A DNA stretch of 63,727 nucleotides, counting the filler, from Reticulomyxa filosa (lineage: Eukaryota; Protista; Foraminifera): the NCBI GenBank assembly GCA_000512085.1. It is 13 parts of 13 records of this genome, joined end to end, with 100 filler letters (N's around TTAATTAATTAA, not from the genome) between each part and the next. Parts side by side here need not be neighbours in the genome. Positions count along the whole stretch, not along the records: positions 1 to 30,727 come from ASPP01007854.1; 12 more parts are not named here. One strand, written 5' to 3'. The position numbers and the translations under genes were made by a program. Within the stretch, counting starts at the first letter, position 1. Each line of letters opens with the position of its first letter. Of the stretch, positions 22,518-30,727 are shown piece after piece. Under the pieces are notes generated by a model that saw only the letters and a list, made by a program, of their open reading frames with translations, made no database searches and was not told where the DNA came from.

Positions 22518-25500
22518 TTATTTTTCTCTCTCCGTATGTCTGACAATGTCAGCCAATTGATCAATGTGTTTTTCTGACATTTTGTATTGCGTAGCAAATT
22601 CCTGATACAAAAGCTTTTGAATTTGAGGTATTTCAGTGATCTCGTATCTCCCTTGTTGATATTGCATCAATTTTTCAATTTGGTCATTAAGCATCATCAT
22701 CTTGACATAGTTGACACCCCCAGTTTCGGTACTTGTATCTTCTTTGCCCTCGTCAATGATAAATAGCACTTGCAAATACAAGCCGATATGAGGTACTGCA
22801 GGCGCAATGCTTTGTTCTTGCAATTGTCTTAGTTTGGTCATGCGCCAGTCAAAAAAATCGTTAATTTCGTCCCATTCTTTGCGACTAGTACGAGGAAGTT
22901 TCTAAATCCAAAAAAAAAAAAGAAAAAAAAAGGTGAATAAACTCTTATATACATTAATATAATATATATATTATATTAATGTATATAAGAATTTATTCAA
23001 AACGTAACATCCCACGTTAATCTTAATTTTTTGATATCAGCACTGTTGAGTGCGGCATGGCAGGCACAAAAGCTGCTGAAATTTCGATTTTTTGTAACGA
23101 CTTCATCATGGTGACAATCTTTTTGATAATGTTGGAGCGTTCTTTGGGCGTCTTTCCTCCCAGCACCGTCAGCTGCGTCCATTTCGAGACACTATTGAAT
23201 TGAGCGATCATGCGCAATACATTGGGGGCTAATTTCCATTTTTCCTCCCCCTTTTTTTTCCACGACTGGCCGATGCACTCTCTCGCTTTGATCTGTTTGA
23301 ACAGATAAAAGTCCATCGACGTCAGCTGCTGAGCAAGTTCATCCGGGTCAAGCAGCATCAAATCCATTCCACTGGGCACCACCAAGTCGCTTTTTTCGAG
23401 ATGAGGCCAGCGTAAATGGACCTGGTCTTTTCGGTATTTCTCTTCTTTGTCTGCCATCTCATTGCCATTGCCATTGCTTTTTGACTTTCCACTGGATGTT
23501 GCACTTTCCAAACTGTTTCTGCTCCTATTAAAAAAAAAAAAAAAACGAAGCTGAGAAAAAAAAAACTACATATGTACATATATGCCTACGTATAATACAA
23601 AACCGAGTAACGTCTGGCCCCTTGACAGACTGAAAAGACTTGCCATTGTTGACGCTTTGCAAAGTGTTGTCCAATTTTTCTTTCAAGTTTTGTGCTTTGG
23701 AAGGCTCGCACACTTGGTCGATGTCTTGTTGAAACTCGGTGATCTGCTGAAGCAACTCCTTTTGCGAGACAAAGTCTTCTTCCCAGTAGTGTTTTATCCA
23801 AAACCTCACAACGTTGCACACGCGCACGCGTACCAACCAGTCTTTTGCCTCCTTGTCTTTTTCCCTCTCTTTCTCATTGCCGATGCTATTTTCGGGGTCG
23901 TCTTCCAATTGAAACTGGTGAAACTGATCTCCTTCACGAAATTGGGTCCGTAATTGTTTCATCAATGAACTGTTTTATACATATACAGCATTGAAAATTT
24001 TTTTTTTTTTTTTTAAAAGGAGGGGGGGGAAAAAAAATTGAACTTTTTTAAATTTTTTTTTTTAAAGTTCAAACAACATACGCACTATCAGCAAATGATT
24101 TATGACACAAGATCAAAGCATTCAAAGTCTTTTGCATGTCATGGCCAATGGGAGAAGTGATATCAATGACCAAGTCAGCCAAAGTCCAAACCCGAGACTC
24201 TTTGCTTCCGCGAGAGCTGCTGTGCCCACTTCGCGTGCCACCATCATCGCCTCTTTGCTGCTGTTGTTGTTTGGTATCAGTGTCCTCCTCGACGACGCTA
24301 TTGTGATGCCGATGTTTTTGTTTGTCGTTTTCGTCGCTGTTTCCAGACCCAATACTTTCGCTCCGCACATTAGTCGTACTTGCAGCACCACCAACACTTG
24401 CAAGAGCAGTAGCAGAAGTTGAAGGCAATGGTTTGACTGGAGGCACTCGATTGGCCACCACGGCCCTGGCTCGCTTGAGACGTCCGACGCCTTCAGAGTC
24501 GTCGCCTCCACCGCCTCCGCCTCCTCCGCCGCCGCCGCCGCTTTCTCCAAAGGCCACGGCGGCCCATGGTGAAGACTGATGCACGTCGCTGAGACTCTCT
24601 CGACCATTGTGCGCGTCGTCCTGGCCTTGGTCGTCGTATTCCAACACAAAGTGATTCAAGAACGGAGGGGACGGGTCGATGTCCGACTTAGTCTTGAAAT
24701 GTCCTCCTATCCCTACTCCTCCGCTGTCCTCTTTGTGTAATTTCAATGCCGACGATGACGACATCACCGACTTTGTGTTCGTCGAACTCTGCGTCGTACC
24801 CGTCGACGATGTCATCGCCGTTATCGTCTTGTAGTGCGCGCTACGTCGCGTCGGCGGGGGAGGCTTACGGTTCGGCGGGTTTGGCTTGTGTCGTGGCGAC
24901 GTCGTCCAAACCGAGTTCTCTGCGTGCTGCCCGCTCTTCAAACCCGTCGGCGATGGAGATGACTCCACGCCGTCGGACGTATACGAATGACGATGATTGC
25001 TTGGGATCACTGCTCTTAGGCCACTCGTATTGCTTGGGTTTTTTTTAAAAAAAAAAGATTATATATACATATACATAAATATATGTATATACATATGTAT
25101 GCATGCTTTGCATGTTTGCTTCATGTAACAAAAAAAAAGATACCTTTGAGGGGTTGGAGACAATCTTGCAGTGGTAACGAGCTCTTCTGTGGCGGAGTCG
25201 GTAGAGTCTTCCGTCTCGTGCTTGATAAATTCGTCTGGACTTTGTAACATTTTAGGCGGAGCTGTTGAGCGCTTCTTTTTCTGTACTTGTCCCAACACCA
25301 TGGCAGTATTAACACACAAACAAACTTACATTAAAAAAATACATATAAATATATATATAAATATATATATATATATTTATATATACATGTATATTAAAAT
25401 GAATTTATTTAATAGGCATTAAATGTCAATGGCACATATTAAAATAATAATAATAATAAATAAAAAAAAAAGTTTGAGAAAAACTGAGTTGTCACTTTGA

Positions 25501-28448: not shown

Positions 28449-30727
28449 TTAAGTATTTGTGTAAGATTTGGAAAACTTTGCATTGTATGCATTAACAAGT
28501 ACACCCCCATTTGCTCCCCCTGCATTTTTGAGAACTTCTACAGAAACCAAATCTGTTAATTGATCTGAACCCTTATTTGAATTAATGTCCAGTTTTTCGC
28601 ATCGACCACTTGAAACATTAGCGATCTGCATAAAATTTTGCTGTGCCCTCTGCTCAATATAGAAAGCATGAACTGGGATATTACGCTCTTTCAAACGTGC
28701 GAGCTCGTCCTCATAGTATGAGGGAATAGAAAATAGTTTGGTATTTTTCCAATAATCTTCACCAAATTTATACTGTTTTGAATCTTTTCTTTTACTAAAA
28801 ACTTCTGGTTTTGTATTTGCGGCGGCATCACCAATTAAGATCACTTGCGAAACAGATCCTTTTTCTTTTTCTACTTCTCTGTTGACGTGAGCCAATCCGA
28901 TTTCAATTGCTTCATTTCCCCATCCATAATTTGCCTCAATACTCTCCATAAAATTGCGAAGATTTTCAGGTTTTGATTCCCAAGTAGATGTCTGCAAAAT
29001 CATATCTTCAGGTGCATTGTAATTGCGATAAACAACAAATTGCATTTCAAAACTGTTTGGAGATTCTCCATTTTCCTTCAATATTGTTGAAATACGTTCA
29101 AACATAGTACATACTGCATTTTTGGCTTTTTGCAACAAATGATCCATTGACCCAGTTCCATCCATAAGAACAATTGTTCTTGAAAGCTTTTTCTGTTCTG
29201 CTCCCTTATTTCTCTCACATAACATTTTCTTCACTGTGTCCACATCATCTCTTTTTAAGGCTGCAATCAATTCCTCACCCAATTTATGTTCATTTGCAGC
29301 ATATTCCACATATTTCTTACTTTCTGCATATTGCAATTTAAAAAATTCACTTCTCTTTGCATGGAGTAATGGATAAAAGTTCCCTGCCTTTCTAGCACTT
29401 TCAATTTCCGTTTTGGTGATTAAAAATCTCTCAAGTGGTTTCTCACATAACACCAAACTATAAGAACCAGAAGTACCTTGTCTTGCAGTTCGTCCTCTAA
29501 TTTGCATTTCTTCAGATAATTCTTCAGAAAGGAATGTTTGAATCACATGAATTCCACCATTCGCAGCAACAATTTCATCACGAGAGATAAAGTCTGTCCC
29601 TCTTCCGAATGCCCTGGTAAACAATCCAACATATCCGGAAGTAGTTGCACGTTTAATTAAAGCTTCTTTTTCTTGACAAATTTTTTCTTCGTCCATCATA
29701 ACCGCATTTTCTTTCATCACAAGAAAATTGGAAGAGTCATAAAATTCCATTAATTGTTTCTTGGATTCAAAAAACACCAATACTGATCTTTTTGTTGCAG
29801 GATTTGTTCCAATCAATCTATCGTCAATTTCTTTCTTAAGAGTAGTAAAGTAATCACATTCTTCCACAATGAGAATATCTTTCTTTTCTGCAAAGATAAG
29901 TTTATTATCACCAAATAAAGATGGCATATAAGTATTTTTTGAAACATGATAATCCTTTTCCACAACTTCTTTTTCTGGTTCACTTAATGTCTTCAATGTA
30001 CCACTCACACCCATAATACAACAGAAGTTTTTAGGAACCTCTGCATAAGAAAAATTACCAATTTGAAATGACATAAATATATTCTTTCTGAAACTCTCAT
30101 CACTAATTTTATTTTGTTCATGCTCATAGTAATATGCAAATAATGTCTTATAACCATAACGAACATTATAACAAATAGTATCCTGCTCTTTATATCCAAT
30201 TTTATCATTACTCACTTGATATCCATGAGATTCAAATGTTTGAATATCATTCAACATATCTTTGATTGCCTCATCCAATAACAAAGACCATTCTTTTAAT
30301 ATTTTGCAACATTCTTCATATTCATTTGATTTTTTAACCTCATCCAGAGTCAAATTGAGTGCTTTGTTCTTCCAAATGTAATCAATCAAATTGGTGATTG
30401 TATGATGGCTTAATGTAGCAGCAGGTGAATAACAACTTCCATAAAATTCTTTATTGAAAAATACATCAACTTCATCAATTAACAGTATTTTGGCTCGAAT
30501 TACACGTGATATTTCAGCTGATTTTTTTTCTTCATCGGGTATGATCATATTTTCCACCAATTTACGAACATCACCTCCTTCATTAATGATTCCTTCACAA
30601 AGTTTGTTGAAAGTGCCATAATGAACATGATCAGTGATACTCAAAGTAGTAAACAATAGTTCAAAACTCTTAAAGTCTCTGTCACTCAAATACTCACTGT
30701 ATGATGCACAACTCACATCAAATCCTA
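28449..30727 (-). CDS. SecA-like SF2 helicase/ATPase motor fused to C-terminal vWA domain (5' truncated by contig end)
   Basis: Uninterrupted >755 aa ORF with GFDVSCASYSEYLSDRD, VHYGT, LLIDEVDVF (motif II), MGVSGTL (III), VLVFFES (IV), TRAFGRGTDF (V) and GGIHVIQTFLSEELSEEMQIRGRTARQG (VI), all SecA-type. It is followed by vWA motifs TIVLMDGTGSM, VVYRNY, GWGNEAIEIGL and VILIGDA. Confidence 0.85.

Follow-up and report, generated by a model that had tools for sequence, protein, structure and literature searches.

SecA is the textbook motor of bacterial protein secretion and, to our knowledge, is known among eukaryotes only from plastids, which raises the question of what a SecA-like coding sequence is doing in the genome of the foraminiferan Reticulomyxa filosa. 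The locus concerned lies in a stretch of 63,727 nucleotides from assembly GCA_000512085.1 (the window, in which 13 parts are joined by filler letters), at the end of the piece that comes from record ASPP01007854.1 (positions 1-30,727). An earlier note, made from the sequence alone, had described it as a SecA-type ATPase motor fused to a von Willebrand factor A (vWA) domain with a metal ion-dependent adhesion site (MIDAS). The gene was found to be a new paralogue of a catalogued, functionally uncharacterised family ('SecA family profile domain-containing protein'), to which its product is assigned by sequence. The reading that is somewhat favoured here is that it encodes a real and constrained module, comprising motor and adaptor, at the C-terminus of a giant GTPase protein, and that this module would handle polypeptides without being a translocase.

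On the minus strand, positions 28449-30725 form a single open reading frame (ORF) of 758 codons, closed by a TAA stop at 28449-28451 and open at its 5' end, where it is truncated by the edge of the piece. The first residue seen lies about 20 residues past the Walker A motif of the family, the consensus of which is GTGEGKS in an alignment of 30 members. As stop codons account for a fraction of only 0.047 across the six frames of the piece, an open run of 758 codons would be expected by chance with a probability of about 1e-16. The ORF had been called intronless and AT-rich; the uninterrupted frame was confirmed, but its GC content of 0.333 is close to the 0.361 of the whole piece and its composition is not unusual. 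The neighbouring genes had been held to be heavily intronated, with which the lengths of the other ORFs on the piece are consistent (492 codons for the next longest and no more than 313 for all others). Every helicase and vWA motif quoted in the earlier note was located in the translated ORF, and the motif residues are invariant or nearly so across the 30 aligned family members.

The first part of nucleotide-binding domain 1 (NBD1; residues 1-89, positions 30459-30725) carries the SecA-like YSxYLSxRD signature that follows Walker A, here YSEYLSDRD (residues 9-17), and the Walker B motif LLIDEVDVFF (residues 81-90, 30456-30485). Motifs II and III are separated by an insert of about 150 residues (residues 90-232, 30030-30458), after which NBD1 resumes (29916-30029) with motif III, GVSGT (residues 239-243, 29997-30011). 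NBD2 (residues 271-430, 29436-29915), assigned through profile and alignment matches, contains FGRGTDF (residues 373-379, 29589-29609), GGIHVI (residues 390-395, 29541-29558) and QIRGRTARQG (residues 408-417, 29475-29504).

That this motor is specifically SecA-like, as had been proposed, was borne out by profile searches of the PDB, by hhalign and by Foldseek. Searched alone against Pfam, the window protein gave matches just below threshold (VWA 22.1 bits, with a cut-off of 23.8; Helicase_C 21.9; P-loop_SecA 20.8), and across the family SecA_DEAD was matched in 28 of the 30 members and P-loop_SecA in 26. The family profile matched 24 distinct SecA or SecA2 sequences in the PDB at E values of 2e-15 to 5e-9, the first match outside SecA being the DEAD-box helicase Mss116 at 6e-5. 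With hhalign, the family aligned to two canonical SecA proteins over 399 columns with a probability of 99.3 and an E value of 1.5e-20. The AlphaFold2 model of the 758 residues was confident (pLDDT, the predicted local distance difference score, 86.6; pTM, the predicted template modelling score, 0.82), and the top 34 matches of Foldseek with this model against the PDB were all SecA or SecA2. Exhaustive structural alignment (VIA) placed SecA2 (Z 19.2, 388 residues) and Escherichia coli SecA (Z 17.8, 344 residues) above motors of the Snf2, CHD4 and FANCM type (Z 13-14). Neither Foldseek nor VIA ranked any non-SecA helicase above SecA and SecA2.

The family is nevertheless distinct from canonical SecA. 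It shares with SecA and SecA2 a two-lobed DEAD motor with the motifs GEGKS/T, YLxxRD, DEVD, GRGTD and RGRxxRQG and, at the site of the preprotein cross-linking domain (PPXD), an insert some 150 residues long, and these proteins are its top matches in both sequence and structure. Identity, however, is only about 15-22%, and no full-length match to the curated SecA and SecA2 models of NCBIfam was obtained, the scores being 19-37 bits against cut-offs of 725-1085 (37 bits against 862 for SecA). In a tree of the motor region, a very long branch with a support of 100 separates the family from canonical SecA, and the family is not nested within bacterial SecA. The window protein further differs in being a eukaryotic and probably cytosolic protein, very probably part of a giant polypeptide, and bacteria that possess a relative retain a normal SecA as well, in at least two genomes.

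The likeness to SecA ends at NBD2, beyond which nothing aligned in hhalign. The corresponding region of SecA includes the two-helix finger that reaches into SecY. SecA_SW (PF07516) gave no match in any of the 30 members, and scaffold, wing and two-helix finger are missing, with a linker and the vWA domain in their place, as the earlier note had envisaged; the C-terminal tail is missing too. The linker that the note called short (residues 431-511, 29193-29435) is indeed helical but spans about 80 residues, with three helices in the model at residues 438-447, 450-491 and 495-505. The second, of 42 residues, occupies the place where the scaffold helix of SecA would begin, a match in position. Because the SecA parts that follow NBD2, the two-helix finger among them, are absent, the window protein is judged from its sequence not to be a Sec translocase, and the proposal of a non-translocase SecA-like motor joined to a vWA domain stands. 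One relative, P0115 (assembly GCA_041443045.1), has a J domain within this linker (residues 697-767; DnaJ, 55 bits, E 8.6e-15), lying between motor and vWA, which points toward the handling of protein and not of nucleic acid.

The insert at residues 90-232 had been overlooked in the earlier note. It sits where SecA holds its PPXD and is of similar size. Of the 29 other members in the alignment, 28 have an insert of 151-168 residues, the exception being the Hexamita protein P0078 (336 residues). The hhalign alignment spans the insert and pairs a hairpin of the family, 'Y-x-V-..-DKIGY', with 'Y-x-V-..-V-I-DE' of SecA. Modelled alone, the insert reached a pLDDT of 86, and its best structural match among 48,161 chains in VIA was an isolated SecA PPXD (5k94_B), a weak one (Z 4.7, 91 residues); the PPXD region of SecA2 ranked fourth (Z 4.0). 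These weak matches suggest that the insert may be a divergent PPXD-like domain.

The C-terminal domain (residues 512-752, 28470-29192) adopts a vWA fold in the model, the Pfam match noted above being to VWA, and VIA aligned it to integrin beta I, ITIH1 and TFIIH p44 over 172-200 residues at Z 16-17.5, the vWA matches as a whole lying at Z 15-17.5. Domains of this kind with a MIDAS typically hold a protein ligand by one of its acidic residues, which contacts a metal ion. The putative metal-site residues D522, T524, S526, G632 and D633 are conserved across the family, the first three within VLMDGTGSM (residues 519-527, 29145-29171), in which DGTGS is a variant of DxTxS, and the last two as the GD of LIGDAA (residues 630-635, 28821-28838). 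Between these two motifs lies a conserved loop, WGNEAIEIG (28896-28922).

It could be argued that the motor is instead a nucleic-acid helicase or translocase, as are most members of superfamily 2 (SF2), and that the vWA domain is a mere docking module like that of TFIIH p44 or Ku. This is the main mechanistic rival. Helicase_C was matched in 19 of the 30 members, motors of the Snf2, CHD4 and FANCM type still align at the Z scores given above, and the vWA domains of TFIIH p44 and p34 are among the best vWA matches. The sequence following Walker A, however, is patterned as in SecA, with YLSxRD against the YLAxRD of SecA, at a position where DEAD-box helicases carry their RNA-contacting motif Ia. 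The SecA matches also beat the best DEAD-box match by ten orders of magnitude, an insert is kept at the PPXD position, and a J domain is fused into the relative P0115. A helicase role is accordingly regarded as unlikely, if still a serious contender. It has a further point in its favour in the literature, where Zhang et al. (PMC3482391) term the domain 'helicase-related'.

How much of the protein is missing beyond the edge of the piece was addressed through its paralogues. Five R. filosa loci include upstream sequence (L022, L023, L024, L035 and L036), and in every one the module makes up the C-terminal quarter of a protein about 3,000 residues long, encoded in long frames on the same strand. 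In L024, Walker A lies within an ORF of 2,399 residues, which is followed by a frame break and a further 703 residues; L023 has 1,865 residues upstream of the SecA-vWA part; and L022, which also contains frame breaks, has 1,470 and 282. Positions 3233-9134 of L035 are colinear with the giant protein from its residue 331 on, with about ten changes of reading frame, and are thus either a pseudogene or a poorly assembled stretch. In L036, the locus of the nearest paralogue of the window gene, giant-type sequence continues right to the contig edge. Owing to the many frame breaks in the R. filosa assembly, the intactness of single giant copies is uncertain.

The same arrangement was observed elsewhere. 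Uninterrupted ORFs of 3,025-3,462 residues are present in L007, L012 and L013, and in Rotaria an annotated gene of 2,998 residues lies beside a shorter paralogue. In L002, a metagenome scaffold of the ENA that also bears Ras and cyclin fragments, a single in-frame TGA is all that splits 2,008 upstream residues from the SecA part, and L003 is arranged likewise. This TGA (L002:9765-9767) falls at a tryptophan conserved in the family (IFAxWT), and reflects either a code in the source organism in which UGA specifies tryptophan or a single nonsense change. From these loci, the full protein of the window gene is very probably about 3,000 residues long, with some 2,300 missing upstream. The earlier note had expected a missing N-terminus with Walker A; Walker A does lie beyond the edge, but the missing part is probably much larger. 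Similarly, both domains of its 'SecA motor plus vWA' architecture are real, yet they make up only the C-terminal module of a GTPase-bearing protein.

Near their N-terminus, the giants share a P-loop domain with G1 (GxTGxGKST) and G3 (CDTPGFxDTxGxE) motifs. Its profile matched septins (E 4e-5) and GIMAP4 (E 4e-4), and among ten members MMR_HSR1 was matched in nine, Septin in five and AIG1 in three (best E 1.6e-6), all below the curated cut-offs. When this upstream region was searched as a single sequence, the PDB and NCBIfam yielded P-loop matches only. On these weak matches, the domain may be a septin/AIG1-like GTPase: it resembles GTPases of the septin, AIG1 (GIMAP) and Toc type in its G1 motif and in the DTPGFxD of G3, and differs from them in scoring below the Pfam cut-offs and, in the present case, in lying outside the window. 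The order of domains in the giants is thus the septin/AIG1-like GTPase, a helical region of about 1,700 residues, the SecA-type ATPase with its PPXD-like insert, the linker and the vWA domain.

Alternatively, the window gene might encode a stand-alone protein of about 1,000-1,200 residues, with a short N-terminal region, motor and vWA and no fusion to a GTPase. Annotated R. filosa and rotifer proteins of 980-1,200 residues would agree with this, as would the protist transcriptome ORFs of 800-1,100 residues in EukProt and MMETSP that are marked complete. The five R. filosa loci all continue, however, into giant-type sequence on the same strand, in L036 up to the contig edge. In addition, residues 1-374 of a rotifer protein annotated at 1,202 residues match the C-terminal portion of the ORF upstream in L002 (E 3e-37), and at least this annotation therefore seems to start within the longer architecture. 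A stand-alone form of the window protein is thus considered rather improbable.

The window ORF finds its best matches in R. filosa proteins, at 63-82% identity and none of them identical, followed by rotifer proteins at about 50% identity with 100% query coverage. At least ten R. filosa proteins are present among the best 120 matches, in line with the expanded family that had been suspected. The motor-region tree places the ORF within an R. filosa clade of eight rows (support 100), its nearest row being P0002 (80% identity). By its sequence, the window copy is an unannotated or different paralogue of the known R. filosa proteins. Comparison with three of these paralogues gave non-synonymous divergence (dN) of 0.14-0.20 and synonymous divergence (dS) above 1; the dN/dS ratio was 0.11-0.15 overall and did not exceed 0.21 in any domain, the vWA domain included, these ratios being rough because dS is saturated. 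The signal is that of old paralogues under purifying selection and not of decay or rapid diversification. The earlier note had also suggested an immunity-like family; this found no support, and the low ratio in every domain speaks against fast divergence among these paralogues.

These results bear directly on whether the copy is a decaying pseudogene or the passenger of a mobile element. The number of paralogues would be compatible with such an origin, as would the frame changes in L035, the frame breaks in L022 and L024, an rve_3 ORF upstream in L002 and a hAT dimerisation domain in the Hydra protein P0117. The window copy, however, has 758 open codons, which chance would hardly provide, its catalytic and MIDAS residues are all intact, and its dN/dS ratio is low. 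DNA similarity to the R. filosa paralogue loci ends at the coding region, no shared flanks or repeats were found between them and the window, and no relative was present among 205 pattern matches in viral contigs. The suggestion that the family is mobile thus found no support, and the decayed or passenger origin is held to be highly improbable. Two observations on possible rearrangements were also made. An extra 211-bp fragment about 2 kb downstream of the L022 paralogue (L022:14310-14517), 73% identical to the 3' end of the window vWA coding sequence, may be a partial duplicate. In P0117 (Hydra vulgaris), the hAT domain (residues 232-300) lies N-terminal to a truncated SecA-like NBD2-vWA part, and the protein may reflect either a transposon fused in by the gene model or a true chimera.

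Beyond R. filosa, full-length relatives were found in bdelloid rotifers, Hexamita, Ectocarpus, Hydra, protist transcriptomes and many metagenome contigs. With one representative genome per species, 16 bacterial loci also encode relatives, in Legionellales, Chlamydiae, Wolbachia and metagenome-assembled genomes (MAGs) of Gammaproteobacteria. In the first three groups, the match is limited to the motor (query residues up to 421-433), whereas in several of the gammaproteobacterial MAGs it extends through the vWA domain. At least two of these bacterial genomes, G001 and G003, hold an intact ordinary SecA too, which scores 438 bits to SecA_DEAD against about 38 bits for the giant. Rows from Legionellales, Chlamydiae and Wolbachia group together in the tree (support 93), and because the backbone inside the family lacks resolution, the tree is not taken to show whether transfer ran from eukaryotes to bacteria or the reverse.

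Given such relatives, it was conceivable that the window ORF came from contaminating bacteria, or that SecA-like DNA of bacterial origin had been wrongly joined to a eukaryotic contig, and two MAG relatives (L006 and L007) do reach 53% identity to the window protein. Against this, the GC content of the ORF is like that of the rest of the piece, the other genes on the piece also have their best matches in R. filosa, the ORF lies inside the well-supported R. filosa clade, and the very long branch separates the family from canonical SecA. A bacterial source is thus scarcely credible. The contig looks nuclear, and its other ORFs are also eukaryotic in type, with an Unkempt-like CCCH finger, ankyrin repeats and WD40/EML-like propellers. 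The 492-codon ORF at positions 82-1560 on the plus strand encodes the Unkempt-like zinc finger, and its best matches, R. filosa paralogues, are local only (86-87% identity over 10-15% of the query). Positions 24069-25010 on the minus strand form the sole GC-rich kilobase (GC 0.52), with a low-complexity ORF of 313 codons that contains a glycine run, a proline-rich stretch and a 9-bp tandem repeat (24503-24541) and gave no Pfam match.

Several features of the bacterial loci were recorded alongside. L007, from a 'Pseudomonadota MAG', holds an uninterrupted ORF of 3,048 residues (L007:3101-12244) with an N-terminal U-box ahead of the GTPase-like P-loop, and could be either a eukaryote-like effector or a misbinned eukaryotic contig. 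It adjoins a gene some 2,100 residues long that gave matches to AMP-binding, PP-binding, P-loop NTPase (nSTAND/AAA-like), pentapeptide-repeat and beta-propeller domains. The giant of L013 has ankyrin repeats and an AIG1-like GTPase as extra domains. In three MAG loci, L006 (6371-6964), L007 (12174-12818) and L012 (12864-13472), the giant gene is succeeded at once, or with an overlap at its stop, by a gene for a tetratricopeptide repeat protein of some 200 residues, the three proteins being 33-74% identical to one another. L008, L011 and L013 instead have an ATPase of the common AAA_14/DUF4143 type in the vicinity of the giant. The bacterial MAG match P0102 stands alone on a 3-kb contig and is uninformative. 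Contig C6 of the Wolbachia genome G002 carries, at 115-124 kb, a pair of SecA-like genes (L028 and L030) 7 kb apart, one a 1,515-residue family member and the other an open frame of 3,911 residues with a much stronger match to SecA_DEAD, over nearly the full-length model at 137.9 bits; ordinary SecA was not reported for this genome in that search.

Domains of apparently the same kind have been mentioned before, a correspondence drawn from the wording of two papers and not from comparison of the sequences. Zhang et al. (2012, PMC3482391) listed 'SecA-like helicase-related domains' beside GIMAP-type GTPases among the effector domains of Amoebophilus, and Gomez-Valero et al. (2014, PMC4256840) included lfa2470 of Legionella fallonii [SecA DEAD-like] among candidates for horizontal transfer from eukaryotes. 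The loci found here in Legionellales, Chlamydiae and Wolbachia agree with this picture of effector domains of intracellular bacteria. These papers list the domain only, with no architecture or function, and the window protein differs in being eukaryotic. The claim that the architecture lacked functional characterisation thus held in that no functional study of the family was found in the full-text literature, but the domain itself had already been noticed.

What such a protein might do can be sketched from its parts, and the substrate, the generation of force and the biological role are what we infer here. In SecA, the two-lobed motor and the PPXD clamp an extended polypeptide. In the family, the metal site of the vWA domain would capture an acidic residue of a protein target, and the SecA-like lobes and PPXD-like clamp would use ATP to grip, pull or pry that target, while the N-terminal GTPase and the long helical region would govern assembly or targeting. 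Midasin/Rea1 and the MoxR-vWA systems likewise couple an NTP-driven motor to a MIDAS vWA domain, and midasin is also one giant polypeptide, but their motors are AAA+ rings and that of the window protein is a two-lobed SF2/SecA-type motor. No sequence kinship was seen beyond the generic vWA fold and P-loops, matches to midasin being limited to the P-loop of the upstream GTPase, and the comparison is one of functional analogy only, in gripping by MIDAS and pulling by ATPase. The setting may be the interface between host and symbiont, a role suggested by the occurrence of the family in both scattered eukaryotes and intracellular bacteria.

A number of points weigh against the favoured reading of a polypeptide-handling module within a giant protein. 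SF2 motors normally act on nucleic acids, and the protein-handling role of the family is a putative one; the J-domain fusion is a single case. The similarity of the insert to PPXD is weak: besides its Z score of 4.7, Foldseek with the insert alone returned nothing at E <= 0.001, and Pfam SecA_PP_bind was absent in all 30 members searched, for which reasons the insert is named PPXD-like and not a proven PPXD. The MIDAS had been described as intact, and its DGTGS and GD are present and conserved, but the usual threonine of the third loop is not evident, the conserved WGNEAIE loop standing in its place. The giant form of the window gene is deduced from paralogues because its own upstream sequence lies beyond the piece edge, and the complete label carried by the shorter EukProt and MMETSP transcriptome ORFs speaks for a smaller protein. 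Finally, no consistent partner gene was found next to the giant in the 14 bacterial loci compared.

The family nonetheless emerges as a constrained and probably cytosolic one in which the parts of SecA that dock to SecY have been lost, a PPXD-like insert has been kept and a MIDAS domain has been gained, within proteins of about 3,000 residues that bear a GTPase. For annotation, this means that a gene far longer than its database record lies behind at least some of the entries of about 1,000 residues, and the motor-vWA module is small enough for expression and assay. As the family is common to patchily distributed eukaryotes (foraminifera, bdelloid rotifers, Hydra, Hexamita and brown algae) and to obligate or facultative intracellular bacteria, it is a candidate player in host-symbiont conflict. 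A bolder proposal, and a long shot, is that the protein is a eukaryotic cytosolic descendant of SecA, with PPXD-like clamp and MIDAS grip set in a septin/GIMAP-like scaffold, that might act against or manage intracellular bacteria, and that the copies in Legionellales, Chlamydiae, Wolbachia and Amoebophilus might be effectors that mimic or jam it. If the family holds, it would represent a SecA motor reused for something other than Sec translocation.

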